A DNA stretch of 64,000 nt, from positions 1 through 64,000 of the forward strand of contig MCFE01000027.1 of the NCBI GenBank assembly GCA_002104905.1. Reading direction: 5' to 3'. The translations under genes and the position numbers were made by a program. This document shows positions 1 to 62,352 of this stretch, piece by piece. A model generated the notes under the pieces. The model did no database searches, was not told the DNA's origin, and saw nothing but the letters and a program-made list of their open reading frames with translations. This DNA is from Basidiobolus meristosporus CBS 931.73. Taxonomy: Eukaryota; Fungi; Basidiobolomycota. Each line of letters starts with the position of its first letter. The first letter of the stretch is position 1.

Positions 1-1141
1 TAGGTAGAATACTTCGGCTAGTTGGAGGTACTTGTCCTCGGGATGGTCAAAGCTACGGCGATGGCGGAAAAGTAGCCATTGCGAATGTTGTTGAGGATGG
101 ATGGGCTGTAGCCTCCAGAGACATCAGTACCAAGGCCAACCTTCTGACCTTCAGTCATCATTTGACGGATCTTAGCGATGCCACTGCGAAGACTCAAGTT
201 GGAGTTAGGACAGTGGGATATACCGGCTCCTCGTTTCTTCAATAATTGACGCTCAGCGTCTGTCGGGTACACCACATGAGCCATGATCGAACGATTGGTC
301 AATAGCCCGTGGGAATCGTAGACTGAGGTGTAGTCTGGTTGGTCAGGGTGAAGCTCCTTGACCCAGGCAATCTCATCAAGATTTTCATCAAGATGCGACT
401 GGATAGGAACGTTGTACTTGGTTGCTAAGCCGCTGAGACCCTTCATCAACTCGCTTGTGCATGATGGAACGAAGCGGGGGGTGACAATGGGGGTGATCCG
501 AGAGTTCTTCTTCCCGAGAACGTATTGGATGAATGCCTCGGTGTCCTTGAGACTCTGAGCAGTGGTCTCGATCAGGTAGTCAGGTGAGTTTCGATCCATA
601 TTGACCTTTCCAACAAACGCACGCTGGCCCTTAGCTTCCACAATATCCGCAAGCGCCTTGGAGGCATCCAGGTGGATGGTAGCGTAGTAGCTGGCTGCTG
701 TGGTACCGCTTCGGATCACTCGGTCCACGACCTTACTGTAGGCATCCTTGGCATAGTTGGTGTTGTTGAATCGGGACTCACGGGGGAAGGTGAATGTGTT
801 CAGCCAGTCAAGTAGCTGTAAGTCCATACCAGAGCCAGTGAACACATACTGTGGAGCATGGATATGGGTGTCAATCAATCCTGGCATGAGGAACTTCTGG
901 CTGCCAAGTGGGAATAGGCTAACACCATACTTGCTGGCGATCTGTTTGGCCTGGCTCTCATTGACATTGCTCTCCACCTGCACGATCTTACCACTCTTGT
1001 CAACTGCGATGACTCCATTGGTGACATGCTCCAAAGGAGGTGGCATTGACTCGAGTGAACAAAGCTGCCATAGAATACATTCTGAGCGGAGATAGCACTG
1101 ATGAGTGCGGTAGAGATGAATGCTAAAGATGAAAGGTACAT
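1..1141 (-). CDS. GUD1: Guanine deaminase (amidohydrolase family), 3' end runs off the window; N-terminal signal-peptide-like segment; two apparent 1-nt frameshifts (~1047 and ~50)
   Basis: Motifs PGLIDTHIHAPQY, TPRFVPSC, SHLDEN, HCPNSN and GLGTDVSGG are in ORF 18..1046. The N-terminus MYLSSLAFISTALISAISAQNVFYGSFVHS lies in another frame from ATG 1141. The C-terminal continuation FDHPEDKYLQLAEVFYL lies in another frame at 1-51. Confidence 0.9.
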
Positions 1142-4538: not shown

Positions 4539-7509
4539 ATGACCATCTCCAAGCTTAGCGGATCATCCTTCTACGGAGTTCGGGGCATAAGGAAGGCTTC
4601 AGTGCAAGAGTGTAAGGAGACTATTGATGCACACAACTTGATCACCAAAACTTACCACCTCACCCTAGTCACAGCCCGTGAAAGAGCAAACAGAATTCAA
4701 AATAGCAATCTCGTCCGGTTGGTAGAGGCATATCGCACCTACGGCCATAAGTGTGCCAAGATTGATCCATTGGATATGTGGCGCCAAGAGTATGTTCAAT
4801 CCTCTTGTAATCAAAAAAGCGGTAACTAACAAGAAGCACATTCAGTCGTGAGCCATCCCTAAACCCGGCCATGTATGGCTTGGTCAATCCGGATACTGTA
4901 TACTACCTTGAAGGTATAGACTGCTTGACATCTTTATTTATACACGCACTAACCGCCCTCTCAGGTGTTTTGGAGATGAAAGGGCTTAAACGTGCAACAC
5001 TTGCCCAGATCATTGATCACTTGGAGCACACTTACTGTGGCCATATTTCATTCGAGTTTATGCACATAGCAGTAAGTTGTATACACTGCGCTTTGTTGTG
5101 AGCCTCGCTAATTTTCGATTCCAGGATGATCACTTACGAAAGTGGTTTGCCCGTCAAGCGGAAACCTACAATGATATCAGATTCTCCAAGGAAGAAAAGT
5201 CCAAATTCTTGGAGTTGATCACAAAATCGGAGACTTTTGATCATTTCATGATGCGTGAGTGTGGCCACCAAAAGCAGTTCAGTCTTGAAGGTTCAGAAAG
5301 CGCGATTGTTGCCCTGCAGCAGGTTTTGGAGCTGTCCAGCAAATACGGAGTGTTGGAAGTCGTGATGTGCTTGACACATCGCTGCCGTATGCAGATCATG
5401 ATGGAGTTGCTGGGTGTGCCCAAGGACTCATTGTTCCGGAAATTCCAAGGGCTCTCCGAGTTTCCAGAGGAGACACCCTCTCACATAATTGGGGACCTTG
5501 TCTATAACTCCCAAGCCTCCGTAGACCTGAACCTGGGTGGGAAACGTCCGCTGCACGTGTCTGTAGTTCCTAACCCCTGCCACTTGGAACTTGTTAACCC
5601 TGTTGCGCTTGGCAAGGTACGAGCCAAACAGGAAGACTATTTATCCCAGGAAACAGACGACTATAAAGTGGAAGATATGGTGATGAGCGTTCAGATGCAT
5701 GGCGATGGTGGCTTCACCGGTCAAGGAGTGGTCACTGAAACATTTGGTTTAACCAATCTCCCACACTTTACTACTGGAGGGACTGTTCACATCGTACTCA
5801 ACAATCAAGTCAGCGTCACCACCGACTCTACGAATGGGCGGTCAACCAGATATTCGTCAGATATTGGTAAAGTCGTAGAGACCCCCGTCATCCACGTAAA
5901 CGGTGATTACCCCGAACTAGCGGCAATTGCTGGACGAATTGCGGTCGACTACCGCAAAACCTTTGGAAAGGATATCATCATAGACATGATCACATATCGT
6001 CGCCATGGGCATCACGAAGCAGAGGATCCATTTTGCGCACAACCCTTAATGTACAAGGAGATCAAGACGCACAACAGTGTGATCGACCTATACACCTCGC
6101 AACTGGTACAAGAGAAAATGATCGATTCCACTCAAGTCATGGCTGATATAAAGGCGAAGCATGACGTTCACATCATGAGCTGCTATCGTAACGCACCAAA
6201 GTATAAGGTCCAACCGACCCATATGCTTGGGAAATGGAAGTCGATGACTGTTCCACTGCAGACTATTTGCAAGATGGATACTGGAGTGGAGCCTAATCTT
6301 CTGCGTAAAATCGGAGTACAGTCGGTCACAGTGGCGAAAGATCTTGTCTTGAATGAAAAGATGAAAAAGCTCAATATTGAGCCCCGCTTGGCGCAAATGG
6401 AGGAAGGAAAACACATTGGATACGCTGCTGCTGAAGCCATGGCTATTGGCTCACTCCTTCTTGAAGGATATAACGCTCGTATTTGCGGCCAGGACGTGGC
6501 ACGTGGCGTATTTATTCCTAGGCACGCCATGATTAACTGCCAAAAGACCAATACCAAGCACACTCCTCTGAACACTCTCTCCTCTTCTCAAGGAAAGCTA
6601 GAGCTAGTGGACAGCCCACTTGGAGAGTTGGCAGTGATGAGTTATGAGTACGGTATGTCCTTGGAGACACCAAATCGATTAAACATATGGGAGGCTCAAC
6701 TTGGGGATTTTTTCAACTCCGCACAAGAGGTGATCGACAGTTTCATCTCAGGGGGGGAAGAGAAGTGGCTACGACAATCGGGATTAGTCCTCGTACTCCC
6801 CCATGGTTATGAAGGAGCGGGCCCTGAGCATACCTCCTGTCGCATAGAGCGCTTCCTCCAACTCTCCAGTGACCGGTTCAATGTGACCGATCCAAACATT
6901 AGCAACAATGTCAACTGGCATGTTGTCAATTGCTCTACGCCCGCTCAATACTTCCACGTCCTACGCCGTCAAATGAAGCGGAATTTCCGCAAACCTCTGA
7001 TTGTTGTTGGACCAAAAAGGCTCACACGTATACCAAAGGCAGTGTCTGATCTAGATGACTTTGCACCAGGCACTTCGTTCCAACCAGTGATCCCGGATAC
7101 CGAGGCCAATAGACTTATGGTACGCCGAGTGATATTCGTCTCTGGAAAACTATACTATGAATTGCTAGAGGAAAGATCCAAGAGAGGTTTGTCAGACATG
7201 ATAGCTCTAGTAAGAGTGGAAGAATTCTCCCCGTTTCCCAAGGAAGATTTGGAGAAGGAAATATCAAAGTATTCCGAGGCTTGCGAGTTTGTGTGGTGTC
7301 AAGAAGAAACCCAAAATGGCGGGGCATGGTTCTTTATGGAATCAAGATTCAATCAAATCCTCCCAGCCCAACGTCAACTTCGATATGTTGGAAGGAGCAC
7401 ATGTGCCGCCCCTGCAAATGGTATTTATGTAAAGCACCTAGATGAACAAAAACGAATTTACGAAGATGCACTCACATTGCCTCCAACTGAGCATCAATTA
7501 TCAACTTAA
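4539..7509 (+). CDS. 2-oxoglutarate/2-oxoadipate dehydrogenase E1 family protein (DHTKD1-like), divergent; 3 short introns near the 5' end
   Basis: Exon 1 has LVEAYRTYGHKCAKIDPL. The long exon has NPCHLE, HGDGGFTGQGVV, NNQ, YRRHGH, WEAQLGDF and PHGYEGAGPEHTSCRIERFLQ. Introns include GTATGT(4790)..TTCAG(4845). Confidence 0.9.
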
Positions 7510-14544: not shown

Positions 14545-17308
14545 TCATTTAGCAAAATGGAAATCCCACGAGTCCAGCCACTTTCTAGCCAGCACTTGAT
14601 CAACGTCAAGTCCCACATGTCCGTAAGTCAATGGAGCAAAGAATACGAACAAACCGACTTGGGCGCCGATGATCAAAAGAGCCGCCAAGTAGGCAACCCA
14701 ACCAGCTCTTGGCCTATAAACAGGGACAAGATCTCCCTTGGCAGGCAAAGATATAGGATATTCAATACCCTTAATAAAGATGAACTGGAACAACACACCA
14801 ACAACCATGTAGTTCAACACGATGGCTGGGAGATAATGGTGAAGGAACAAAGAGCGTCCCATCAAGAAGAATGGGAAATAGTGAAGTGCCCATCCCAGCA
14901 AGAGGTAGCCGCCAACATTGTGAAGACGCTTTCTAAGGACTATTAAAGTGTTAGGTAAACTTGACATTCAAATGCGGGCCGACTTGAGAAACACTTACTT
15001 GGATCAATCAAATGGAAGTTTCTTCTTAAAGCAAGCTGATCAGCAAAAAGTACACCGATAAAGGCAGTGAGCGCAAGGTATCCAAACACCCAACCAAATG
15101 GATTGGGCAGGAAGTAGATTTGGCTACGGTCCGATCCCCTGGTCCAGAATGAGATACCGCGGATGACGAATGGCCAAGAGATGGGCTGGGATTGGAACGG
15201 ATGAGTGGCGACAAGTTGAGAGTTTTGAGCAATCATCTTCTTTTGCAATTCCCAGAATTTAACAAAGAAATTCAGATGCTGCACTGGACGTGGCACAAAC
15301 GTCTCGTCTGTTGTGTCTTTGCCAATGATCTCATCAATTGTCCAAATGTTCGTGTTGTCCTTGGGATTCTTATTTCCATTCACCTCTTGTTGGCCAGAGG
15401 CCCAGTCAGGTAAGGCCTCACCGTGTGTCCACAGGGCAACGCCGGTGTCCAGGTGGATGAATTTGACGCCGCTCGACTTGGTCTTTAAGGTAGCATCATC
15501 AGAAACACCATCCTCGATAGAGATCCTGAAAAGAGTCTCGTTGAAACGGGAAGTGTCATCGATAGGGATGGTGGTGAACTCAGTGTTGGTAGGCATCAAA
15601 GGCGAAGCAACATCGTGGGTAAGAAGGATCGAGCCAGTTCCGATATGCACTAGTTGGATGATGTCGCCATTCTTGACCTTGGGCATTTCATCCTCATAAT
15701 CCTCCTCGAATAGCTCTCTGCCAGGTCTGATTGTCCAATGGTTGTTGGGGTCTTCTTTGTGAGGATATCCAGTCACTTGCTGGCCTTGGCTACTAATTCT
15801 TCCGTCATCATATCTAAGAGGGTATCTTAGTGGATGCGAGTGAAGATACACCTTGGTGCCTTTGTGCAGGAGAGTGATGTTATCGAAATATCTGACATCT
15901 AAATGCATGTCGGTTAAAACAGAGTTCACTCAGAACAGGGCAGATGTTAGGAGATTTACCCATGCTATTTGCGTGCATGTCGTTTCCTTCTAAAGTAGCT
16001 TGGAAAGAATTGCTCATGAAAGCGTCCCCAGTACCACTCTTTGTTAAGATAGCAAAGTGAATGTAGAAGAAAGATAGATAGATGATCACAGGTACAACGA
16101 TCAAGCTAAGAGCACGGGCCATGAAATGCTTGCCCACTTGACCCTGAAATGACGATCACACGTTAGTGGCCGATCTACATGAACATACAGACAAAAGGAC
16201 ACGAACCAGAGTCAGTCCACGGCGAACATCGAGGAGTCTCCACAAATCCATCAACACACAGATTCCAATCAGACCTACAACAAATAAGCCAACCATCTTT
16301 ACGCTGTGCGCACGGTTTGAGATTAGCTTTTCGAAGTCACGCTGATAATCGAACGAAGATGTTACCTGGTGGTGAGAGCGATATTCACACCAGTGGCCAA
16401 GAGCCAGAACCACCATTCACCGGAGAAGGATCTACATGACGGATATAGTTAGGTACGGGATAGGTGTACACAAAATGACCAAATTGACAATACCTATTGC
16501 GGAGTTTGTAAAATCTGACATAGGAGTAGATGGCAAGAGCCATGAACAAGATCAAAATACTATCCAGTAGGATAAGTCGAGATTGTGTGACCAAGGTGTT
16601 ATCTTATGGTAGCGAACTCGTTAGGTTGGTGAAATGACAGTATCCGACAAGGGCGACACCTACCAAAGATAACCAAGCAAGCGCACACGGTACAGGCGAC
16701 GATGGAGAACCCACACTCACGAAGAGTTTCATACACCACGGGGACGAGAAGAGAGCCGAATACAGCGAGAAGACTTCTCAAAGGAATGTAGGGAACATTT
16801 TCTGTTTGATAGCTGTTTCCAATCTCTTCAAACAAGAAATGTCCGTCAAAACCCACGAACCAGCCCATCGCGGCGATGAGTAACTTTGCAAGCGGAGGGT
16901 GAACGTCAAAGAAATATTCACGGCGCAAGTAGTAGCTACCGAATTTTCCGAAATGAACCTCATCAAAACTACACAGAGTCAGTAAATCAACGTCTACACT
17001 TGGAGGAATGTGCGCGGGAAAACTACTGACACTACTTCATTGGGCTCGTGAATCTTGTAAAAGCGGGTGGCGAATGCTAGCACTGTCAACACCGCTAGCA
17101 CGATGCAGGAATTTCTTTTTGTGCTGGAGGAGCCTGTTTGCTAAATGAAGACGAGTCAATTATCGGAAAGATGAGGAAGTTATGAGATCCGAGAATATAC
17201 CTTAAACTTGGACTCTTCAGCAGTTTGGGATGCCAGATCATTGGTTTTCAGCGACTTTTCGCCTTCAACTGCTCTACGGCGTAGAGAGCTCTCGCCAGTC
17301 GATGTCAT
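14545..17308 (-). CDS. PMT4: Dolichyl-phosphate-mannose:protein O-mannosyltransferase, PMT4 subfamily
   Basis: FDEVHFGKF, REYFFDVHPPLAKLL, MIR-domain exon (LHSHPLRYP...QQVTGY), HYFPFFLMGRSLFLHHYLPA, C-terminus WDFHFAK*. Confidence 0.92.
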
Positions 17309-19025: not shown

Positions 19026-20498
19026 ATGAATTTTGGATACCCTTTGTCAAGCCCTTCCCCGTACGACCACGCCTCCAACATCCCCATGTTCGAAACGTTC
19101 CACCAATCCCCACACGGTGAATTTCGCACCTCATTTTACAACCCTTTCGAAGTGAAAACACGCAAGCGGACCAAAAAGAGCCAGTTCAAGGTGCTGGAGC
19201 GCACTTTCCACGAGAACCCGAAGCCCAACAGCGTCTTGAGGAAGCAGCTGGCCCAGGAGCTGGGGATGACTCCACGGGGGGTGCAAGTATGGTTTCAGAA
19301 TCGACGTGCCAAAGCTAAGAACCAACGCATGAGTGGCGAGGCAAACAATGTGACTTCTGATCTTCAAGCTGATGATGCGAGAGATGCCGCGATGAACGGG
19401 CCCAATCAGCCTTCCAAAAATGGAACCGACTGCGAACCTAGCACGCCAAATGGAACCGATGCAAGCCATTCAAGCATCCATATGGAGAAGGTCCCACAGC
19501 CGTCAGATCGCACCCGGGACTCGGTTCTACTCTCTGCGTTCGACCTCAATAATGCCTACTTCGCCACTCAAGAGAACCCCAAAGGATCAGACAACTATCA
19601 TTTCTCGAGCCCCCCACGAGAGACCGCTCGCAAGCCAAGGCAAAGGCCGAACCCAGAGGCATTGAAGATCGCCTCCACCCCGGAGCAGTACGAAATGATG
19701 CTGCATCAGCACCAGGCCCGTCGAGAGCAGCAAAAGATGCTTCAGCACAAAAAGTCCCTAGAGTCACAGCTCTATTATCAGCAACAGAACTACGGCCACC
19801 TGGGTGAGGTTGATAATCGCATGCAAGAGCTCCGTCATCGCAGCCATTCACTTGTAGGCCACAAGTCGGAGTACAATCACTACGGTCCACTGTCAGCAAG
19901 CGATGCCTCTGAATACTCCACTGATTTGTTCAGCCCAATGTCCGGAATCATGAACAACTCTGAGCCGGCGCCACTGACTCCTATGACTGCGGCCTCCATG
20001 CCAGAGCATCTCCACAGTTATATGAACCCTTTTAGTCCAGGCTATCATACACCGAACGAGTCAGGGGAGAATTTCCAGACGATGACCACCAGACGCAACT
20101 CCTGCCCACCAGAGTTTATGGCGGCGTTTGCGGATATGCACTACATGCCCGAAGAAAAGCCACACCTCGCCACGATAGTGGAGGATGAAGCTAACGCTGG
20201 GCTTCAAACAGAACTCGGTGATGGGGAACACAGATTTCCGAACCAATCTAGGTATGTGCTTGAGGTGAATTCGTATCCACGGTCAGGTGCCGCCTCTTCA
20301 TCCATGCAATCGGAATCGAACCCAGCTGAGGCTGACTACGAACGACTTAATGCGCGGCGGCAATCCGAACCACGTATGAATAGACTGCACACACAATTCC
20401 ACCACTCTGCGCCCACAAACCCTACCGCAAGCCTGCTTCGCGGCCACAGTTTTGACTCGACCATGTGGCAGCATGGAAGAGATTTGCGAAGATATTGA
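19026..20498 (+). CDS. Homeodomain transcription factor, single exon
   Basis: YNPFEVKTRKRTKKSQFKVLERTF...MTPRGVQVWFQNRRAK, followed by a long Ser/Pro/Gln-rich tail. Confidence 0.93.
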   Translation: MNFGYPLSSPSPYDHASNIPMFETFHQSPHGEFRTSFYNPFEVKTRKRTKKSQFKVLERTFHENPKPNSVLRKQLAQELGMTPRGVQVWFQNRRAKAKNQRMSGEANNVTSDLQADDARDAAMNGPNQPSKNGTDCEPSTPNGTDASHSSIHMEKVPQPSDRTRDSVLLSAFDLNNAYFATQENPKGSDNYHFSSPPRETARKPRQRPNPEALKIASTPEQYEMMLHQHQARREQQKMLQHKKSLESQLYYQQQNYGHLGEVDNRMQELRHRSHSLVGHKSEYNHYGPLSASDASEYSTDLFSPMSGIMNNSEPAPLTPMTAASMPEHLHSYMNPFSPGYHTPNESGENFQTMTTRRNSCPPEFMAAFADMHYMPEEKPHLATIVEDEANAGLQTELGDGEHRFPNQSRYVLEVNSYPRSGAASSSMQSESNPAEADYERLNARRQSEPRMNRLHTQFHHSAPTNPTASLLRGHSFDSTMWQHGRDLRRY

Positions 20499-29905: not shown

Positions 29906-30772
29906 CTAGAAATTCAATACACCTTCGCGAATGCCGAGCGCATAGGTTGGGTTAAAGGACTTTGCCTGCAAAATCGAGAGAGGTGGGAGCGTCAGGGTTG
30001 GTTGGCTGTCACCATGAGAGCATGAGATACAGTTTCTGCCAACCATATCTCGGATGGGTGGTAATTGGCAGCAGGCACTCATCTCATAAGGCTCTGAAGT
30101 ACTATTGGATCCCCTGGAATGTGAATCGTCATAGGAGCTTGTGGATTCGGATAGTGGTGAGCCTGGCAAGTGGGAGCTCTCATGGATCAAAGAGGCAGCA
30201 CTCAACGAAAGTGGAGGAAGTTTCTCCGAGCTGAAGGTAGAATTGGGTGGAGTCAGAGGCGGCGAGAGTTTGACCCTTTTGGGCCCGTCGTTTTCTTTGG
30301 ATGTGGTGACGGGCTGGGTCTTGATGAATATACTCTTGGTTTCATAATGCCATGACAGCTGGGACCGCTTTGCGGTGCGGCAGTTCAATTTAAGAACGGT
30401 GAAATTGCGCTTTCTTTTCTGCTCGCTGCTTTCGCTCTCAATGTCAAGCTCATGAGGGACGATCAGCGGCTCGTACTTTTTCTTTTTCAATGATTGGCGA
30501 CGGTTTTGGAACCAAATCTGAACTGTACGAAGGTTCATGTTGAGCTGCCGGGCAAGCTGTTCCTTAATCTCGCTGCTGGGGCGATGGTTCACTTGGAATG
30601 CTTCCTCAAGAATGGCTTGCTCCTCTTTGTTGGTCCTTCTACGAGGTTTGCGTGAATTTACCATTGGCTTGATATTACAAGCGAACTCCTCGGGTTTGGT
30701 GTTCACCCAGTCAGTTGGCGAGGGGAAACTAGAGGAGACAGCCTTGCAATTATTATCAACCCTAGCCATCAT
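29906..30772 (-). CDS. Homeodomain transcription factor, single exon
   Basis: KPRRRTNKEEQAILEEAF...LNMNLRTVQIWFQNRRQSLKK. Confidence 0.92.
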   Translation of the reverse strand: MMARVDNNCKAVSSSFPSPTDWVNTKPEEFACNIKPMVNSRKPRRRTNKEEQAILEEAFQVNHRPSSEIKEQLARQLNMNLRTVQIWFQNRRQSLKKKKYEPLIVPHELDIESESSEQKRKRNFTVLKLNCRTAKRSQLSWHYETKSIFIKTQPVTTSKENDGPKRVKLSPPLTPPNSTFSSEKLPPLSLSAASLIHESSHLPGSPLSESTSSYDDSHSRGSNSTSEPYEMSACCQLPPIRDMVGRNCISCSHGDSQPTLTLPPLSILQAKSFNPTYALGIREGVLNF

Positions 30773-33593: not shown

Positions 33594-34884
33594 TCAGTTG
33601 TGGCAGAATAGCTTACGCAAGAGCGTGTGCTTCTTGGCGTACCCGTTCAAGATCTTCTTGTTGACCGTCGACTCAAACTTCTTGGCCTCGGCCAGGATGT
33701 CGCCAAGAGATCCGGAGAACGGCTCGCACAGTCTAGCGCTCAACACCTTCATGATGTCTTCGAACTGATCTAGCTGCAAAAGACGTGGTTCATTCCGTTT
33801 CAGCAAGGCCAGCGAGACCCTCAGCAGTGTCACATCGATCCCATCCAAGAACATGACGTCATATATCCTCTGCACCAACGGCAGTGGGAAACAGCACCCG
33901 AAAATGGTCAAGAACCATTGCGTGGAATACATACCGGTCTTGACGTTGTAGGCATCCAGGTGATCCAACAGTCTCGGAAGGTGCGTGGACATCAGGGATC
34001 GCAGCTGATAGATCCTCAGCTCGAGGCCAATCATGTTGTGCGAGTATGTGGTGCGCAGATTGTAACTCTCCATCATCCTAAACATTATCATCAGCACAAT
34101 GGCCCTGGGATTGCATTCCAATGGGGACCACCAACCTTACAAACACGCAGAACGCCTCGCATTCCTCCAGCTGCATCAACAAGATCCCAACGATGTGGCC
34201 AAAGCCCTGGCAGTAGCCAACCTGGGCATCGTAAGTGGAATACACCCGCAGAATGTTTCTCATCCCCGTCTGACCTGGCCCATCTTTGTCCTGGAACATC
34301 TCCAGCCTTGGGAAGGTGCGCGGTAGATCCAGGGCGATATCACAGTCATGAGGGGATGCCTCGTGTGCCAACTGCGAGTAGAGCGTTTCCAAGAAGGTCC
34401 GGTCCCCCTTGCTCATGATCTTCCACAGACGGCCACGATACACCGAGGGTATCCCCATGTAAAGTTTCTCCCGGACCAGCTCCGGCGCTTCCTTGTACAC
34501 CTGTCCGAAGTTGTTGGCCAAATCCTCCCAGAAAGTATAGTTGATTTGTGGAGCAAGCTCTGTGTAAACGGTGGTTAGCTGGGCTGGCTGGAATGGAGCT
34601 TTTAGCAAGACTGGGGATGGGTAACTAAGCTGATCTAGCTCTAGGTCTATGGAGATGGTGGACACCTCGGAGCTGGTCAGCGGACTGGCGTCCAACCCGA
34701 AGGGGGCAATGGTGTCAAAGGAGTCGTGGTTGTAGGCATTCTCAGGAAGCGAGCTGATGAGATGATATTCGACCGATGGGGATTGGGCTGTGGAGTCTCG
34801 TGATAGGCGATGAAGTAACTTTGGGTCAAGAATGATGTCTTCCTTCTCTGTCGAGATAGGGTAAAAAGCGGCGACTGTAGTCAT
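33594..34884 (-). CDS. TBC-domain Rab GTPase-activating protein (EVI5/Gyp5-like); 1 intron
   Basis: GIPSVYRGRLW, IALDLPRTFP (Arg finger), GYCQG (Gln finger), MYSTQWFLTIF, RIYDVMF. Confidence 0.92.
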
Positions 34885-43678: not shown

Positions 43679-45184
43679 TTACTGCTTCAGCGCCTCTCCG
43701 TTCAGCAGCTCCATCTGTAATTTGCTCTCAAGTTCTGGTGGTAATTGAGTGTATAAAAATGGATCGGTTGATGGGGCATTAGCATCAGGCTGCTCTTGAG
43801 GAACGTACTCTTCAGCTTCTGGCTCTAACACAGGAGTAGGGGCATCATCGTACATGTAATCATTGGTGAACTGCTCGTAACACGAGCTTGAGCTCTGATA
43901 GTCGATACCAAAGCTTTTCAGGTAAGACTCGAGCATAGGGTTTTCTGCCTTCACCTCCAATGTGGATAGGTTATCAGGAATTTGAGGAGCGGAGTTAAAG
44001 ACTTTGCGTGCTTCGATGTAGCTGAAGTTCGATGTCGGTTGATTTTTCACGTGCTTAAGTATTTCCTCAATTGAGCCATGCTTCTTGATCAAGCTCAGCC
44101 CTTTTACAGCACCAATTCCCTTGAGTTTGCCCGAGAAGTCGGTTCCGCAAAGAATACACAGGTCTACAAATTGCTCTCGAGACAATGCAAGCTCCTCGCG
44201 AGCCTTGATAACGTTGATCTGAATGACTGGGGCACCTTGGAAAAAGTATTGGCGAAGCACTGGACCATCGCCAAAAAGAACTGCATCGGTGTCCTCGCTA
44301 GCGGTAGCATCAGTCAATCCATGGGTGGTGAATGAGGCGCACATGGCTTCCGCCTCGTGGTGGTCAGCCACGACGTAAGAGATCCCCATATATTCTAGCA
44401 GTTCCATTGTTTCTTCTTTCATTTTTTCAGTGACTCTGACAACCCTGTTGGTCAATGAAAGCAGCATGTTGTGGTTGTAATTCTGCAGTTGGTCAATGCT
44501 ATCTAACAGGTGGCGTTGATCAAAGGCTACGTTTGACATTGCGAGTTTTCGAAATAGGTTTATTTCTTCCGATGTGATAAAATTACTGTAGTTCAGTGCT
44601 GAATGTCGAGCTCCTTTCCCTTGGGTATGCGAGATTTGGCTAACCATGAGCTCCAATTCCTCTCTGAGCTTCTCATCTTCCAACAGGGGAGCTCCTTGAG
44701 CAACAGCTGTTGGTGGCGACTCTGTGACCGGTACGACAGTATCTATAAGCCCTGAATTGGCTAAGCTTCCTGTTAAATATCTAGACATCTGCGCGCGAAG
44801 ATTGTCAGAAGAGTCGGAGCAATTCTTCACGAGTTCTCTTGCTCTGCTAAGCCGGCTTTTTCTCTGCTCTTCTAGCGTGAGACGAGATACGTTGGAAGAG
44901 CGTAGCTGAGCTCTTCGGTTGGTCTCATGGACTTTCTGTTTGTTTCGAGCCTTTCCGTCGAACACGAAAACTGGAGTAATATTCATTTGCTTCAGATAAT
45001 TTCCAAACTGGTAGAAGCCCTGGACATGTCGTGGTTGTGGCAGCTGGGGACTAGCTATGAATCGGTACAGATAGACACTCGCATCTAGAGCGAGGTTTAT
45101 GTTACGAAAGTCGGAAGTAGCATGCGTGGTCAACGAGCCAGGAGCGAATCTTTTCAGCAAGGGCGTCAAATGCGCGATACCCAT
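43679..45184 (-). CDS. XPG/FEN1-family 5' nuclease with long internal insertion, single exon
   Basis: MGIAHL, DASVYLYRF, PVFVFDGK, EAEAMCA, SEDTDAVLFG, ILCGTDF and the H3TH motif GIGAVKGLSLIKKHGSIE. Confidence 0.9.
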   Translation of the reverse strand: MGIAHLTPLLKRFAPGSLTTHATSDFRNINLALDASVYLYRFIASPQLPQPRHVQGFYQFGNYLKQMNITPVFVFDGKARNKQKVHETNRRAQLRSSNVSRLTLEEQRKSRLSRARELVKNCSDSSDNLRAQMSRYLTGSLANSGLIDTVVPVTESPPTAVAQGAPLLEDEKLREELELMVSQISHTQGKGARHSALNYSNFITSEEINLFRKLAMSNVAFDQRHLLDSIDQLQNYNHNMLLSLTNRVVRVTEKMKEETMELLEYMGISYVVADHHEAEAMCASFTTHGLTDATASEDTDAVLFGDGPVLRQYFFQGAPVIQINVIKAREELALSREQFVDLCILCGTDFSGKLKGIGAVKGLSLIKKHGSIEEILKHVKNQPTSNFSYIEARKVFNSAPQIPDNLSTLEVKAENPMLESYLKSFGIDYQSSSSCYEQFTNDYMYDDAPTPVLEPEAEEYVPQEQPDANAPSTDPFLYTQLPPELESKLQMELLNGEALKQ

Positions 45185-45301
45185 GGATGACAGCCAAAAT
45201 ATCAAGTAGGAGAGGAAGCCTATCAAGGGACGATTTCGAATGAAATTTTCAAATTTATTCTGAACTAACGCAGCAGGTCAGCAAGATTCGTAGGATGTTT
45301 A

Positions 45302-50015: not shown

Positions 50016-51650
50016 ATGTACGGCATTCGTAGAGTCAGCTCTCAAAGGTTGCAACAACTGAGTTTCAACCACACGAATTTTGTTAGCAGACGTCAACTAG
50101 CTCAGACCACTGCACTCTATGTCGGCCGTTCTCGTAAAGATAAAACCCCGACACAGGGTGATAAAGGCATTGGCAGTATAGAGGTCGAATCTCTCGAAAG
50201 CCCTCCGACTGCTGATGATAGCCCGAATTTCGAAAGCTTCTTCCCACCTTCACGTAGAAGCCAGCGTCGGGAAGCGTTGAACTTGGAAAAAAAGGCCAAG
50301 AAAATACCAGTCCCTCTTTCCTGGTTAGGCACGGATTCTGACTGGGACGAATCCACTAGCGCTGAAGAATCGTTTCAGAGAGGAACCCCTGAGGGAGAGT
50401 TTGGAAGAAATCGGATTGGTGCTGTGGTGCTTCCTAACGAGCTTTCCACTGCAATTGACGAAGTATTACATGATAAGGATAAGCAGTTACTTCGTGTTGA
50501 TGCGATTCGTATATTCGATTCGTTGCGCTCTACTTCAGCCGTAACACGTAAAGAGTCGACAAAGCGTGAGGGTGAAAGAGGCTCTAGACGATCAACAGAG
50601 GATGAAGATAGCAAGCCTAAACCTGTGGCTGTGCCTGCACCGGAGGTCCAGCCTTACTACCTCCAATATGGGATGCGAGAGACTTGGGGATATTTGGCGG
50701 CAAGAATGCCAACGACGTATGCGTCAATCTGTTTTGTCTTCCAGGAGCTTTGCAAGAGGTTACCAGACTTCAAGCCCATCAATGCGCTAGATTTTGGGAC
50801 AGGTCCTGGAACAGCCATTTGGGCAGCCCGGGAGTATTTTGGGAAATCCGTCAAGAGGTATCACGGTGTGGATATTTCGGATTCTATGCTGACCGCTGCC
50901 GAGGCCCTAATAGAGAAATCAACCATTCCTAATGTCACATTCGAGAGATACTTCTCCTATAATCCGAAGGAGGGAAAGTCCGATCTGGTGATCAGTGCCT
51001 TTTCATTGTCCGAGCTACCAAACGATGGGATCCGGCAATCCACCCTCGAGGCGTTGTGGAACAAGACAGCAGATGTGCTTGTTCTTGTGGAGCGCGGAAC
51101 ACCCGAAGGCTTTCGCATCATCTCATTCGCCCGACAGCATCTCCTCAGCCGAGCCAACAAAGTCTACGAGCCAGGGGTTTCGCAGAAATCGGGCAGGGAG
51201 GGTCAGTCAACAGGTGCCCACGTCGTTGCTCCATGTCCCCATGATGGCGTTTGCCCTATGGTCAACTCCTCTACGTGGTGTCACTATTCCCAAAGGCTCC
51301 AACGTCCCCGAGTCTTGATGAAGACAAAGCATGCAAAAACCAACATCGAGGACGTTCATTTCTCCTATGTCGTGCTTCGTAAAGGACCCAGGCCCGAGAT
51401 GCAGAGTACAGGTACAAAAGACATCGTCAAGGACGCATACCATTGGCCGCGTCTGGTTCGTGCCCCGCTTAAACGTGGAGGACATGTTGTGATGGATCTC
51501 TGTAGCTCCAGTAAATTCATAGAGCGTATGATTATTCCGAAATCCCAGGGGAAACTTGAATATCGCGACGCACGCAAGGCGTCTTGGGGAGATATATTTC
51601 CTCATTGTTCCAAGAAGCCAACACAACGCAAGCCGATCCCCGACGTATAA
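50016..51650 (+). CDS. RSM22: Mitoribosome small-subunit assembly factor Rsm22/METTL17, single exon
   Basis: Basic presequence-like N-terminus, YLAARMP, LDFGTGPGTAIWA, LVLVERGTPEGF, VAPCPHDGVCP, WCHYSQR, KRGGHVVMDLC, ARKASWGD. Confidence 0.93.
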   Translation: MYGIRRVSSQRLQQLSFNHTNFVSRRQLAQTTALYVGRSRKDKTPTQGDKGIGSIEVESLESPPTADDSPNFESFFPPSRRSQRREALNLEKKAKKIPVPLSWLGTDSDWDESTSAEESFQRGTPEGEFGRNRIGAVVLPNELSTAIDEVLHDKDKQLLRVDAIRIFDSLRSTSAVTRKESTKREGERGSRRSTEDEDSKPKPVAVPAPEVQPYYLQYGMRETWGYLAARMPTTYASICFVFQELCKRLPDFKPINALDFGTGPGTAIWAAREYFGKSVKRYHGVDISDSMLTAAEALIEKSTIPNVTFERYFSYNPKEGKSDLVISAFSLSELPNDGIRQSTLEALWNKTADVLVLVERGTPEGFRIISFARQHLLSRANKVYEPGVSQKSGREGQSTGAHVVAPCPHDGVCPMVNSSTWCHYSQRLQRPRVLMKTKHAKTNIEDVHFSYVVLRKGPRPEMQSTGTKDIVKDAYHWPRLVRAPLKRGGHVVMDLCSSSKFIERMIIPKSQGKLEYRDARKASWGDIFPHCSKKPTQRKPIPDV

Positions 51651-58749: not shown

Positions 58750-59375
58750 TTTTAGACCCATTCTCTATGCTCAGCATCTGAGCTGATGTAGTTTGTATGT
58801 ACAGAAATTGTACCATTTATCCTACATAAAGGATCATGCTGAACCTGTATCACTAGTCTTGGTATGAGTATGCTTCCGAATCACTTGCCCTCCTGAAACA
58901 ACATCATCCCCACACCTCAACATCTTGGTACAGATAGCCGATTTCGGATTGGAACTAGCGGGTGTAGCATGCGCCTTTTCTTCCTGTGTACTGGCGAGGA
59001 AAGGAAGCAATCCTTCCTTTAATTGACCAGATGCTGTGCCAGAAGGGGTTTCATTCACCGATGATACGCGATGATATTTGTTGATCAGCCGATGTTGGAC
59101 CCGATGTTGGACCCGATGGATACCAGTTCTACCAATATACCCGAGTTACATAGTAGTCAGTGCCCAAAACCGAATAGCCTGGGTTGCTCTTTGTACGATT
59201 GGCCCCTTAAACTAGATTATGCTAATTCAACTTTTGGTTGTTGATTTGGTGTGCACGGTTACAGCATGATTTGCCACTTTTTGTCTAGAAAATCGATTCT
59301 CTGATGTACACAATTAGAGTGTTATCTGGACTCACTTCGAGGCCTCTACACGTCCGTTCCACCCCGTTAATTCCA

Positions 59376-60335
59376 ATGGAGATTGAAATAAAAATCCGCT
59401 TCCAGTCTGCCAAGGAGCTCCAGAGATTTGAGTCTTGTTTAGGAAAACCGCCGAAGGCCATAGAGCAGCAGGAGAATTACTACTTCGATGGCAGCGAGCA
59501 TGAACTGTAAGCAACCTCTCGATTCTCCTTCCTATCGACAGTAGCCTTTTCTCATGCAGCCTGGACATGTTGCTTTAGTGAACAGCAGCGTACGGTTTTC
59601 CGTCTCCGAAAGATTTCAAAGAGTTCCCCCGAGGAGCCAACCAAGCAGACCAAAGCCAAGATTACTTTGAAAGGAAACGCGGTATTGGAGGCGGGCATTT
59701 CCCGGGTTCAAGAGGTTGGTTCCTCTGTTTATGGTTCTTTTAGCCCCCCCCCCTCCTCCGATTGACAGTGTCTACGTTTATTCCAGACCGAGGAACCTTT
59801 CGATTACGAGTTGGTGGATGGAATCGTGAAGGATCCTGATTCCCTACGTTTACACTCCACAAAGTATTGTTATTCCTTGCTCTTGAAATGATTTCTTTGG
59901 GCTAAGACTCGCACTGACTGTAGGAGTCCACTCCTGGAGAGTATTGTGAAAAACTATCCAGTCGATTCTTACAAGCTGGTTGGATACTACAACACATTGA
60001 GAAAGCTATACGAGTGGGAGAACTATATTTTAGCTGTCGATGATACAGAGGTACTGTACTTCTACTTCGTTGTGGGTACATTTGGCAGTTGCTGATATGT
60101 CATTAGTTCCCCTTCGGCAGAGGTTATGAGGTAGAATTGGAATCGGAAGATGCGGAAGTTGCCAAAGCCAAGCTGTAAGTAACCCATCATGACTTCACCC
60201 TTGATCAAGGACGGATTCTTATGATTGGGTTTCCTCTTTCCCTGTAGGGTTTCGTTTTTGCAAGACAACGATATTCAATATAGCTTCAGTAAGCGCAACA
60301 AATTCGTCAATATGCGAATGGGAGAAATCCTTTAG
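59376..60335 (+). CDS. CYTH / triphosphate tunnel metalloenzyme, resembling plant TTM3; 5 introns
   Basis: N-terminal ExExK (MEIEIK), QENYYFDG, FRLR, ITLKGNAVLEAGISRVQE, VDDTE, YEVELES, NKFVNM. Confidence 0.88.
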
Positions 60336-60497: not shown

Positions 60498-62352
60498 TTA
60501 TGGCTGTGGTATTTTAGACGGTGACTGTAAATACGGATGTAACGGCTTAAACTTGTGTCTTCTCGATAATCCAACTCTGGCTGGTCCACCAGAAATTACC
60601 GGGCTGCGAGAACTAGATTCTACAAGGATAACAAATTAGTGCCAAAGTTACAATTCTAAATGAAACATGGATGGATTTACGAGCGCTGTCGTTTGCTGGA
60701 ACTGTCGGCTTGGTTACTAAAAGTGGTTTGAGTGAGCTTGAAACCTTCAGCCCTACGGAAGGAGTCCTGTTGATCGTATTGTTGGTAGTTGGGCAATTTG
60801 GGGTTGCATTACGTGACTTGGGGGTTCGGGTAGCTTTTGGAGTATTGGGTGTAGCATCCTCCACATTTTGTTGGACATTTGATTCCATTGTGTCACTTTC
60901 TTTACCAACTGAGTCAGAATCTGTTGTTTCTTCGGTTTTGCTGACTTTGGGTGCTGCCAATTTCTTCCTTTTAGGCTTCATTGGTGACTTGACTTTCCTT
61001 TTGGATTTCAACGTCTCTTCAAATTCACTTCCACTCTCATCTTCACTGACCAAGCTGTCCACACGAGGAATCGGGTTAGCTGATCCTCTAGATGCTCGCT
61101 TTGGTTTTGCGTTTCCTTCGGAATGCTCAAACTCATTGTCACTCGATCTCGAACTACTGGCTGGCTTTTTCCGCGCTGTGCGTGGGGAAACCCGCTTAGG
61201 TGTTGTGATTTCGTCATCTATTACAATGCTCACATCCTCACTTGGGGCTGTCTTCAATGAAACTTTTGGAATCACGATATTCACTTCAGTCATTGCAGAA
61301 GCGGTTGCCAAGCTTGGATGTGTATCCTCCTCTGAAGATGATGCTTGTTTGTGCTCCTCTTTCTGCTTTACAATCCGCTTTCTCGTATCTTGATTAGGTG
61401 TAGATTGAGGCTTTGTCCTGGGTCTTCCATGGGGGATTAATGCCATTTCATCATCACTTAAAATATCTTTTGTATCACTCAAATCGCCATCGTCAAATAA
61501 ATCTTCGATTTCTATACAGGTCAAAGATCAGCTTCAATCAAACCTTCTAAACATTCATAAACCATCAATTCACCTTTCGGACTAGGTACTTGCTTGGAGT
61601 TCTTCGCTTCCGAGTGACCCTCTTTTACTTTTACTGAAGGGGTCTCAACAGGCCCCGAAGGTGTTGATGTATTTGATGAGGGTTCAGCCTTCTCTTGAGA
61701 CACTATCCGTTGCTGTTCTTGAGGAATTGGCTCAGGAGCTGTATTATTATTGGGAAGCAGTCGTTCTTTACGTCGAGAAGTAGGACGCTCTTGGTTACCA
61801 AAAAAATTTGGATCAGCCCAAATATCCTTAACGACAGTACGGTCGACTCTACCCATATCTATACAATCCTCCTCTACCAAGGAAAGCTCGAGAGCTTTCT
61901 TGATATCGGCCTGCTCTCTCCTCTCTGTGGCGGAGAGGCGAGAACGCTTCGATTCTCTACGTTAACCAAGAGTGTTGGTATGACATCGAACTTTAACTAA
62001 CTAATATGATAGAGGATACCTGTAGCTGCTTTCGGGACCCTCTTTACTAACTGAATCGACGATCTTTTTACGCTCGGTTCCCGCTAAACGAAAATCATCA
62101 AAATCATCTAAAAGAAAGGAAACGAGGTTAACTTTCTTATGTTGATGTGTCTATGGAAAGAGCCTGATAAACAACCTGTCAGATCCTCAAATTTTGGCTT
62201 GGGTTGAAATAGTGGATCGACTTCTGGGTTTACAGCGTAATCGACGTGTTTCTTGGGTCTATTGGAACAAATGGTGGTTGGGCTAAGTCAACAGTCAGTC
62301 AGGTGGGATGCTATACTGGCAGACAGTACCTCGAAGATCTTCTCGCCTCCAT
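60498..62352 (-). CDS. RAD51AP1-like disordered protein with UIM-like helix and C-terminal RAD51-interaction-like motif; about 5 introns
   Basis: N-terminal RPKKHVDY and DDFDDF, EQADIKKALELSL, Lys/Ser/acidic disordered middle. The last exon after a 61-nt GT-AG intron reads ARVGLSRRHKFKPLHPYL. Confidence 0.75.

Follow-up and report, generated by a model that had tools for sequence, protein, structure and literature searches.

A RAD51_interact motif on the terminal exon of a Basidiobolus gene and its possible relation to RAD51AP1

Results

Gene structure at the locus

The window analysed here, a stretch of 64,000 nucleotides from the fungus Basidiobolus meristosporus CBS 931.73, carries near its end a six-exon gene on the minus strand (Table 1), the last exon of which encodes a match to the RAD51-binding tail of human RAD51AP1. 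RAD51AP1 and RAD51AP2 have been called vertebrate-specific (PMC1636435), in reviews likewise, and our literature searches found no paper placing either of them in fungi or discussing them with opisthokonts.

All five introns run from GT to AG and measure 61-71 nucleotides each, and the joined exons give a coding sequence of 1530 nucleotides whose only stop is at its end. The last intron, with junctions GCTC/GTAAAT and TTGTAG/AATCT and a branch-like CTAAT about 20 nucleotides before the AG, had been proposed in an earlier sequence-only reading of the window together with a conserved C-terminus. Both were borne out by the sequence and by comparison with the related species B. ranarum. The 39-residue product of the terminal exon includes ...GGPARVGLSRRHKFKPLHPYLQ..., and the tail motif within it, RVGLSRRHKFKPLHP, lies at 60534-60578 on the minus strand, where that reading had put it; its placement of a UIM-like helix at 61878-61916 was equally correct. 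If intron 5 were retained, the frame would close at 60613 after 22 additional residues. Because ATG, GTG and TTG are all missing from the exon-6 frame, no mechanically called open reading frame (ORF) holds the tail motif. The motif had been described as hidden, which is true of the mechanical ORF list but not of the public annotation: a protein search with the exon-5 ORF retrieved ORY05227.1 (here P0001), a "hypothetical protein K493DRAFT_333619" of B. meristosporus CBS 931.73, whose C-terminus is identical to that of the six-exon model, and the terminal exon is thus already in the public model. In the searches described below, the queries were exon sequences and two public proteins, P0001 and, from B. 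ranarum, P0002; the joined translation was used for the frame check and for the comparison with P0001.

At the N-terminus, P0001 departs from the model given here. Its intron 1 uses an acceptor 24 nucleotides upstream (exon 2 from 62282; extra 62259-62282), which adds SPTTICSN, and its intron 2 an acceptor 24 nucleotides downstream, which skips 62084-62107 and loses DDFDDFRL; by coincidence its length is also 509 residues. RPKKHVDY and DDFDDF, both reported in the sequence-only reading, are obtained with the splice choices made there. The N-terminus of P0002 reads MESRRSSRPKKQVDY...DDFDDFRLEG, agreeing with those choices and not with those of P0001. The 24 nucleotides coding for DDFDDFRL share 23/24 positions with B. 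ranarum, whose annotation treats them as coding, and the introns are 31-45% identical. A paralog in B. ranarum, P0004, has RTKKKPDY at the N-terminal basic motif and DDLEDFRLEG at the acidic-aromatic block. Since ortholog, paralog and nucleotide conservation all agree with it, the earlier N-terminal model is the better one. The N-terminus of P0001 is probably mis-spliced, or else represents an alternative isoform, and the splice sites at this end of the public B. meristosporus model probably need correcting.

The C-terminal tail

We compared the tail with the Pfam family PF15696, RAD51_interact, for which the gathering cutoff is 25 bits. Exon 6 alone scores 26.9 bits (E 5.4e-6), a borderline pass. 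Excised tails score 28.6 bits (P0002:480-533) and 25.8 bits (P0001:465-509), and the tail of the paralog 19-20 bits. In a PDB sequence search with the orthologous 44-residue tail, the only matches at E<=10 were two chains of human RAD51AP1, 9qnc_B (E 0.14) and 9qn8_B (E 1.2), with parvglsrkhkfkplhp in Basidiobolus aligned to SLRLGLSRLARVKPLHP in the human protein. When RVGLSRRHKFKPLHP is set against human RLGLSRLARVKPLHP in that alignment, the residues required for RAD51 binding are present.

In human RAD51AP1, the substitutions R316A, L319Q, L328A and H329A (old numbering) abolish RAD51 binding, and likewise in RAD51AP2; in both proteins the motif lies on a short last exon (PMC1636435). Cryo-electron microscopy (Kuhlen et al. 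2025, 9QN8 and 9QNC) placed Site-M, 332-LRLGLSR-338, in a hydrophobic pocket under the N-terminal domain of RAD51, and L345 and H346 of Site-C in a groove of RAD51's ATPase domain, and showed that RAD51AP1 binding stabilises the RAD51 filament and the L2 loop (PMC12704761). The Basidiobolus sequence, ARVGLSR-RHKF-KPLHP, keeps all of the binding-critical residues R, L, L and H, has V for L334, and separates Site-M from Site-C by 4 residues exactly as human RAD51AP1 does. The motif sits at the extreme C-terminus, 11 residues before the stop, on a short last exon. As judged from sequence, then, the tail is a statistically sound RAD51_interact match, and its predicted binding motif is identical to that of human RAD51AP1 at every position tied to RAD51 binding by mutagenesis or cryo-electron microscopy. 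Because a Basidiobolus terminal exon carries it, the RAD51-binding motif is not confined to vertebrates.

A degenerate copy of the motif precedes the tail by about 35 residues. This segment, SVGLKVSSSLKPLL, has the form VGL-x7-KPL with the spacing of RVGLSRRHKFKPLH, and is unchanged in the ortholog and almost unchanged in the paralog (SIGLKASSSVKPLL). A Pfam search with the degenerate copy gave no match. HMMER weakly aligns the Basidiobolus tail with a similar human segment, KKVSLSSDTTRKPLE. The upstream copy may provide a second, weaker contact with the recombinase.

To model the complex we used a surrogate, a RAD51-type gene from a metagenome contig (L107:398-1402, minus strand) fetched by a degenerate Walker-A pattern. 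Compared with human RAD51 the surrogate reaches 621 bits, with DMC1 353, and it keeps all of the pocket residues named in PMC12704761. Two copies of it with the exon-6 peptide gave ipSAE values of 0.02 and 0.13 (mark 0.34), which, with a surrogate in place of Basidiobolus Rad51, is evidence neither way.

Conservation in Basidiobolus

The B. ranarum ortholog, P0002 (K7432_007943, UniProt A0ABR2VZD7), has 533 residues, is 56% identical and likewise has six exons. UniProt names it automatically as a "RAD51 interacting motif domain-containing protein", and we found no study describing A0ABR2VZD7. The gene, at L001:6001-7944, has a matching exon layout with a 39-residue last exon. A gene for a CYTH-domain protein lies directly downstream (window 59300-60335, minus-strand side) and is syntenic in B. 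ranarum at L001:8158-9227.

Comparison of the two species gives 78% identity for exon 6 and 33% for intron 5, and the exons flanking that intron are conserved. Exon-6 differences fall at codon positions 1/2/3 as 8/1/17, and the ratio of nonsynonymous to synonymous substitution rates (dN/dS) is 0.069 at a dS of 1.2. Within a 28-codon core of the exon, 18 of 84 bases differ and one amino acid does. The first 52 codons of exon 4 show a similar skew, with 7/3/31 differences. From this pattern, exon 6 is coding in the stated frame and under strong purifying selection, and the comparison with B. ranarum supports the splice sites, including those of the last intron.

B. ranarum also holds a diverged second copy, split across two short contigs of 4.4 and 4.7 kb: P0003 (KAK9686387.1) is the C-terminal half of this paralog and P0004 (KAK9686952.1) its N-terminal part. 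The tail is the best-conserved segment across the three Basidiobolus sequences, the diverged paralog included. In the P0003 model the last intron is read through in frame (YIFSLLLSLYMYYLMYLNL) before the conserved tail GGPARVGLTRKHKSKPLHPYLQS.

The rest of the protein

Ser, Pro, Lys, Glu, Arg, Thr and Asp abound in the protein, and the ESM Atlas model of the ortholog, with a confidence (pLDDT) of 0.40, indicates that it is disordered. The RAD51AP1/NUCKS1 family has two Lys/Arg-rich regions that bind DNA; in the Basidiobolus protein basic patches, TTPKRVSPRTARKK and KSKRKVKSPMKPKRKKLAAPK, are present and conserved, a composition that by itself is no proof of DNA binding. The acidic-hydrophobic block IEDLFDDGDLSD...SDDEMAL could be a counterpart of the UAF1-binding SIM. 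The VKDIWADPNFFGNQER block is conserved and has no known human counterpart. The helix in exon 4 had been called UIM-like. Its consensus residues (acidic-x3-L-x2-A-L-x-L-S) are present and conserved in ortholog and paralog, but it scores 12-15 bits (E 0.02-0.2) against Pfam UIM PF02809, below the cutoff of 21. Since the consensus is kept and the scores fall short, "UIM-like" is a fair label and membership of the UIM family is unproven.

The N-terminal basic motif, the acidic-Phe block and the DLxxALxLS helix can be seen by eye in the same order as in RAD51AP1 and are kept in ortholog and paralog. The four elements, tail included, coincide with the islands that ortholog and diverged paralog have kept in common, which argues that they are functional. 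We shuffled P0002 20,000 times with its composition preserved and scored the products against the four human strings quoted in the sequence-only reading, the N-terminal ones being what we take the human sequence to be. The RPKKQVDY match was reached in 2.2% of shuffles anywhere and in 0.065% at the N-terminus, the DDFDDF match in 7.5%, the ADLKKALELS match (against human RDLEVALALS) in 0.7%, and both the tail match and the three N-side matches in order in 0/20,000, figures that overstate the case because the motifs were picked post hoc and the human N-terminal strings are presumed ones.

Feature searches of the ESM Atlas (7.7 million clusters) returned chordate RAD51AP1 clusters at ranks 2 and 3 with the whole protein and, with residues 1-135, from which the tail is excluded, one such cluster in third place (score 0.75); RAD51AP1-cluster scores in this range (0.75-0.79) are leads only. 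Rank 1 in both searches was an arthropod cluster of unnamed proteins (255 residues, 171 members, scores 0.79-0.80), which might represent an invertebrate RAD51AP1/NUCKS-like family bridging fungi and vertebrates. Taken together, these observations weakly favour a real N-terminal resemblance to RAD51AP1. Structure-based ESM Atlas matches, with TM scores of 0.1-0.4, are meaningless for a disordered protein and were set aside, and matches in the PDB to uS19 and CD2 (P0002:1-135; N-terminal profile) were dismissed as chance.

Other genes in the window

Elsewhere in the window, about 10 kb separates two homeodomain ORFs on opposite strands, 19026-20498 (plus) and 29906-30772 (minus), with Pfam E-values of 6e-19 and 4e-15. 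The ORF at 43679-45226 (minus strand) has XPG_N and XPG_I about 170 residues apart, which points to a Rad2/XPG-family nuclease, a further DNA-repair gene. The housekeeping ORFs are listed with the features of the main gene in Table 1.

Table 1. Coordinates of the six-exon gene, its conserved elements and housekeeping ORFs of the window
Feature	Position	Strand	Remarks
Whole gene, start to stop codon	60498-62352	minus	six exons, 509 residues; public locus K493DRAFT_333619, Basidiobolus meristosporus CBS 931.73
Exon 1	62330-62352	minus	MEARRSS and two bases of an R codon; 87% identity with B. ranarum
Exon 2	62176-62258	minus	with the split R codon gives the basic N-terminal motif RPKKHVDY (about 62237-62258)
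Exon 3	62020-62107	minus	opens with the acidic-aromatic block (D)DFDDFRL at 62084-62107, then AGTERKKIVDSV
Exon 4	61574-61956	minus	the protein's most conserved block, ESKRxRLSATERxEQADxKKALELSxVEEDC...VKDIWADPNFFGNQER
UIM-like helix EQADIKKALELSL	61878-61916	minus	within exon 4; conserved in ortholog and paralog
Exon 5	60681-61511	minus	long Ser/Lys/Pro/acidic middle
Acidic block IEDLFDDGDLSD...SDDEMAL	61438-61509	minus	exon 5, conserved; putative role
Island TEVNIVIPK	61264-61290	minus	exon 5, conserved; putative role
Island TTPKRxSPRxARKK	61165-61206	minus	exon 5, conserved; putative role
Island SEFEE	61015-61035	minus	exon 5, conserved; putative role
Basic patch KSKRKVKSPMKPKRKKLAAPK	60946-61008	minus	exon 5, conserved; putative role
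Degenerate upstream copy of the tail motif, SVGLKVSSSLKPLL	60718-60759	minus	seen in the sequence
Intron 5	60620-60680	minus	61 nucleotides, phase 1, GTAAAT...CTAAT...TTGTAG; lies between the tail exon and the remainder of the gene
Exon 6, terminal	60498-60619	minus	(Q)SSSRSPVISGGPARVGLSRRHKFKPLHPYLQSPSKIPQP and stop codon; 122 nucleotides
ARVGLSR, counterpart of human Site-M (LRLGLSR)	60561-60581	minus	R, G, L, S, R identical; V for L334
KPLHP, counterpart of human Site-C (L345/H346)	60534-60548	minus	followed by YLQ (60525-60533)
Amidohydrolase	18-1046		housekeeping ORF
2-oxoglutarate dehydrogenase E1	5077-7509		housekeeping ORF
Protein O-mannosyltransferase fragment	14943-15929		housekeeping ORF
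RabGAP-TBC	34078-34884		housekeeping ORF
Mitochondrial Rsm22	50016-51650		housekeeping ORF

Discussion

Our results make it probable, by analogy with the human protein, that the gene encodes a disordered, nuclear-type Rad51 accessory factor of the RAD51AP1 kind. We likewise expect, on balance, that its tail binds Basidiobolus Rad51 in the manner of RAD51AP1 and that the protein promotes filament stability and strand invasion. Following the human cryo-electron microscopy structures, KPLH would hold the tail in a shallow groove of Rad51's ATPase domain and RVGLSR would enter a hydrophobic pocket beneath the Rad51 N-terminal domain. The protomer interface and L2 loop would be stiffened, thus stabilising Rad51 filaments on single-stranded DNA and stimulating strand invasion. 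The Lys/Arg-rich patches could supply DNA binding, and the UIM-like helix and acidic blocks might recruit the protein to modified chromatin or to partners.

Shared ancestry with RAD51AP1/NUCKS1 is the likeliest origin of the protein, at odds close to even. Under such ancestry only short islands would survive, because disordered sequence evolves fast. The fuller scenario, in which the gene is a true descendant of the RAD51AP1/NUCKS1 ancestor and a RAD51AP1-type grip on Rad51 was present in the ancestor of opisthokonts and has since disappeared from yeasts and other Dikarya, we hold tentatively, as possible and somewhat short of even. The sequence-only reading had proposed a true RAD51AP1 ortholog. 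The matching tail and the weak N-terminal resemblance speak for this, but HMMER detects no similarity outside the tail, WVPP is absent and no relatives appear beyond Basidiobolus. The tail is also found on RAD51AP2, a protein otherwise unlike RAD51AP1, which is half of what that reading had named as evidence against itself.

Several observations weigh against a RAD51AP1-like role or shared descent. Word-based protein searches run with the exon-5 ORF, with the tail region and with the N-terminal region brought up nothing beyond two Basidiobolus proteins, and an hmmsearch with a full-length two-species profile against 1.84 billion representative proteins gave four matches at E<=0.001, P0001 to P0004, all from Basidiobolus, and none from any other fungus, animal or protist. 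"Ancestral" is thus without support from intermediate lineages. In the PDB, which includes full-length human RAD51AP1 (9qn8_B), N-terminal queries and a three-sequence N-terminal profile found no RAD51AP1 match at E<=10, a test that is insensitive to islands of 8-13 residues, and searches with whole P0002, P0002:1-62 and P0002:335-425 (the acidic/basic middle) gave no match. Even for the tail, whole-protein PF15696 scores are 22.8 (P0001) and 24.1 bits (P0002), just below the cutoff of 25, and phmmer E-values against the PDB are weak at 0.07-1.2. The top PDB match of extended C-terminal profiles was the POU-specific domain and linker of Oct-1 (1gt0_C; E 0.0085 and 5.6e-4), which we take as spurious. 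It covers 58 columns of a 78-column C-terminal profile (...KPLL...SSDSS.SP...GLSRrrK) and is a notably good false positive. Because this unrelated linker outscored RAD51AP1, weak E-values on such sequence are not to be trusted. A search for W/F-x-P-P upstream of the tail found none, with TKPTVPA (60694-60714) at a comparable place; in the human protein WVPP is Site-N, the DMC1 contact and second RAD51 contact (PMC12704761). Lastly, the tail of RAD51AP2 does not bind yeast Rad51 or DMC1, and tail binding therefore depends on the surface of the recombinase.

Much of this would be accounted for if the gene had RAD51AP1-like function without orthology, as a lineage-specific disordered nuclear protein that acquired the motif by convergence or by movement of a terminal exon and still binds Rad51. 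RAD51AP1 and RAD51AP2 set a precedent, having only the tail in common, each on its own short last exon. The Y-L after HP in the Basidiobolus tail is typical of RAD51AP2 and not of RAD51AP1, the length is 509 residues against 335-352, and the lack of WVPP and the restriction of HMMER-detectable relatives to Basidiobolus fit as well. Against it, a query of just the N-terminal 135 residues places a RAD51AP1 cluster third among 7.7 million, and the basic motif stands at residues 8-15 as in the human protein, is rare in shuffles and heads elements in the same order. We find such a motif without common descent unlikely on these grounds, yet it is the alternative that survives best.

Less likely still is a chance match of the tail, or one that serves some other partner, the protein then being a chromatin- or ubiquitin-binding factor outside recombination. 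The motif is short, about 15-20 residues, the full-length Pfam scores stay under the cutoff, the spurious Oct-1 match (E 5.6e-4) shows how weak matches can mislead, and the UIM-like helix suggests ubiquitin binding. However, the Pfam E-value of 5e-6 stays significant after whole-proteome correction, the experimentally critical residues and the spacer are all kept, no part is conserved more strongly across paralogs than the tail (dN/dS 0.07), and the short tail query finds only RAD51AP1 chains in the PDB at E<=10. Basidiobolus is an inhabitant of the guts of amphibians and reptiles, and horizontal transfer from an animal host has the circumstantial support that the family is otherwise described in vertebrates and that other fungal relatives were not found, but five short fungal-type introns, synteny conserved in two Basidiobolus species and a diverged paralog make it highly improbable, and any transfer would be ancient because similarity to vertebrate RAD51AP1 is only at the level of motifs.

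An intact Site-M/Site-C tail in a fungus would mean that this mode of binding RAD51 predates vertebrates or arose twice, and either origin bears on the evolution of recombinase accessory factors. The Basidiobolus tail peptide and Basidiobolus Rad51 form a directly testable pair. If the gene does descend from the common ancestor, Basidiobolus could serve as a fungal model for animal-type Rad51 regulators. The practical weight is limited, as the securely shared part is a short motif and the UniProt name already flags the B. ranarum ortholog.

Comparison with known proteins

NUCKS1 is a disordered acidic and basic nuclear protein with a RAD51AP1-type N-terminal basic motif, and the Basidiobolus protein is like it in being disordered, acidic and basic and of nuclear type and, by eye, in a motif that resembles this one. 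Unlike the Basidiobolus protein, NUCKS1, a paralog of RAD51AP1, has no RAD51-binding tail (PMC4787752).

Human RAD51AP2 also bears its RAD51-binding tail on a short terminal exon (PMC1636435). HPYL of Basidiobolus is in register with the Tyr-Leu that comes after the motif there, and YLQ resembles the Y-L-K of RAD51AP2. In contrast, RAD51AP2 has 1159 residues, is meiosis-specific and has none of the N-terminal elements, and its similarity to RAD51AP1 is confined to the tail (PMC1636435).

Human RAD51AP1 (PIR51) differs from the Basidiobolus protein in its length of 335-352 residues, in having the WVPP of Site-N, and in L334 where Basidiobolus has V. The Basidiobolus protein has the conserved VKDIWADPNFFGNQER block of its own, and outside the tail the two show no HMMER-detectable similarity. 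They are alike in an RxGLSR-x4-KPLHP tail with the same binding-critical residues and spacer, in the placing of that tail at the very C-terminal end, on a short exon of its own, and in a largely disordered, Lys/Ser/acidic body. R-x-KK-x-V-(D/N)-Y, an acidic-Phe block and DLxxALxLS follow one another in the same order in both, if the human strings are as we presume them to be. The gene is thus an undescribed fungal carrier of a known motif family and no new kind of system.

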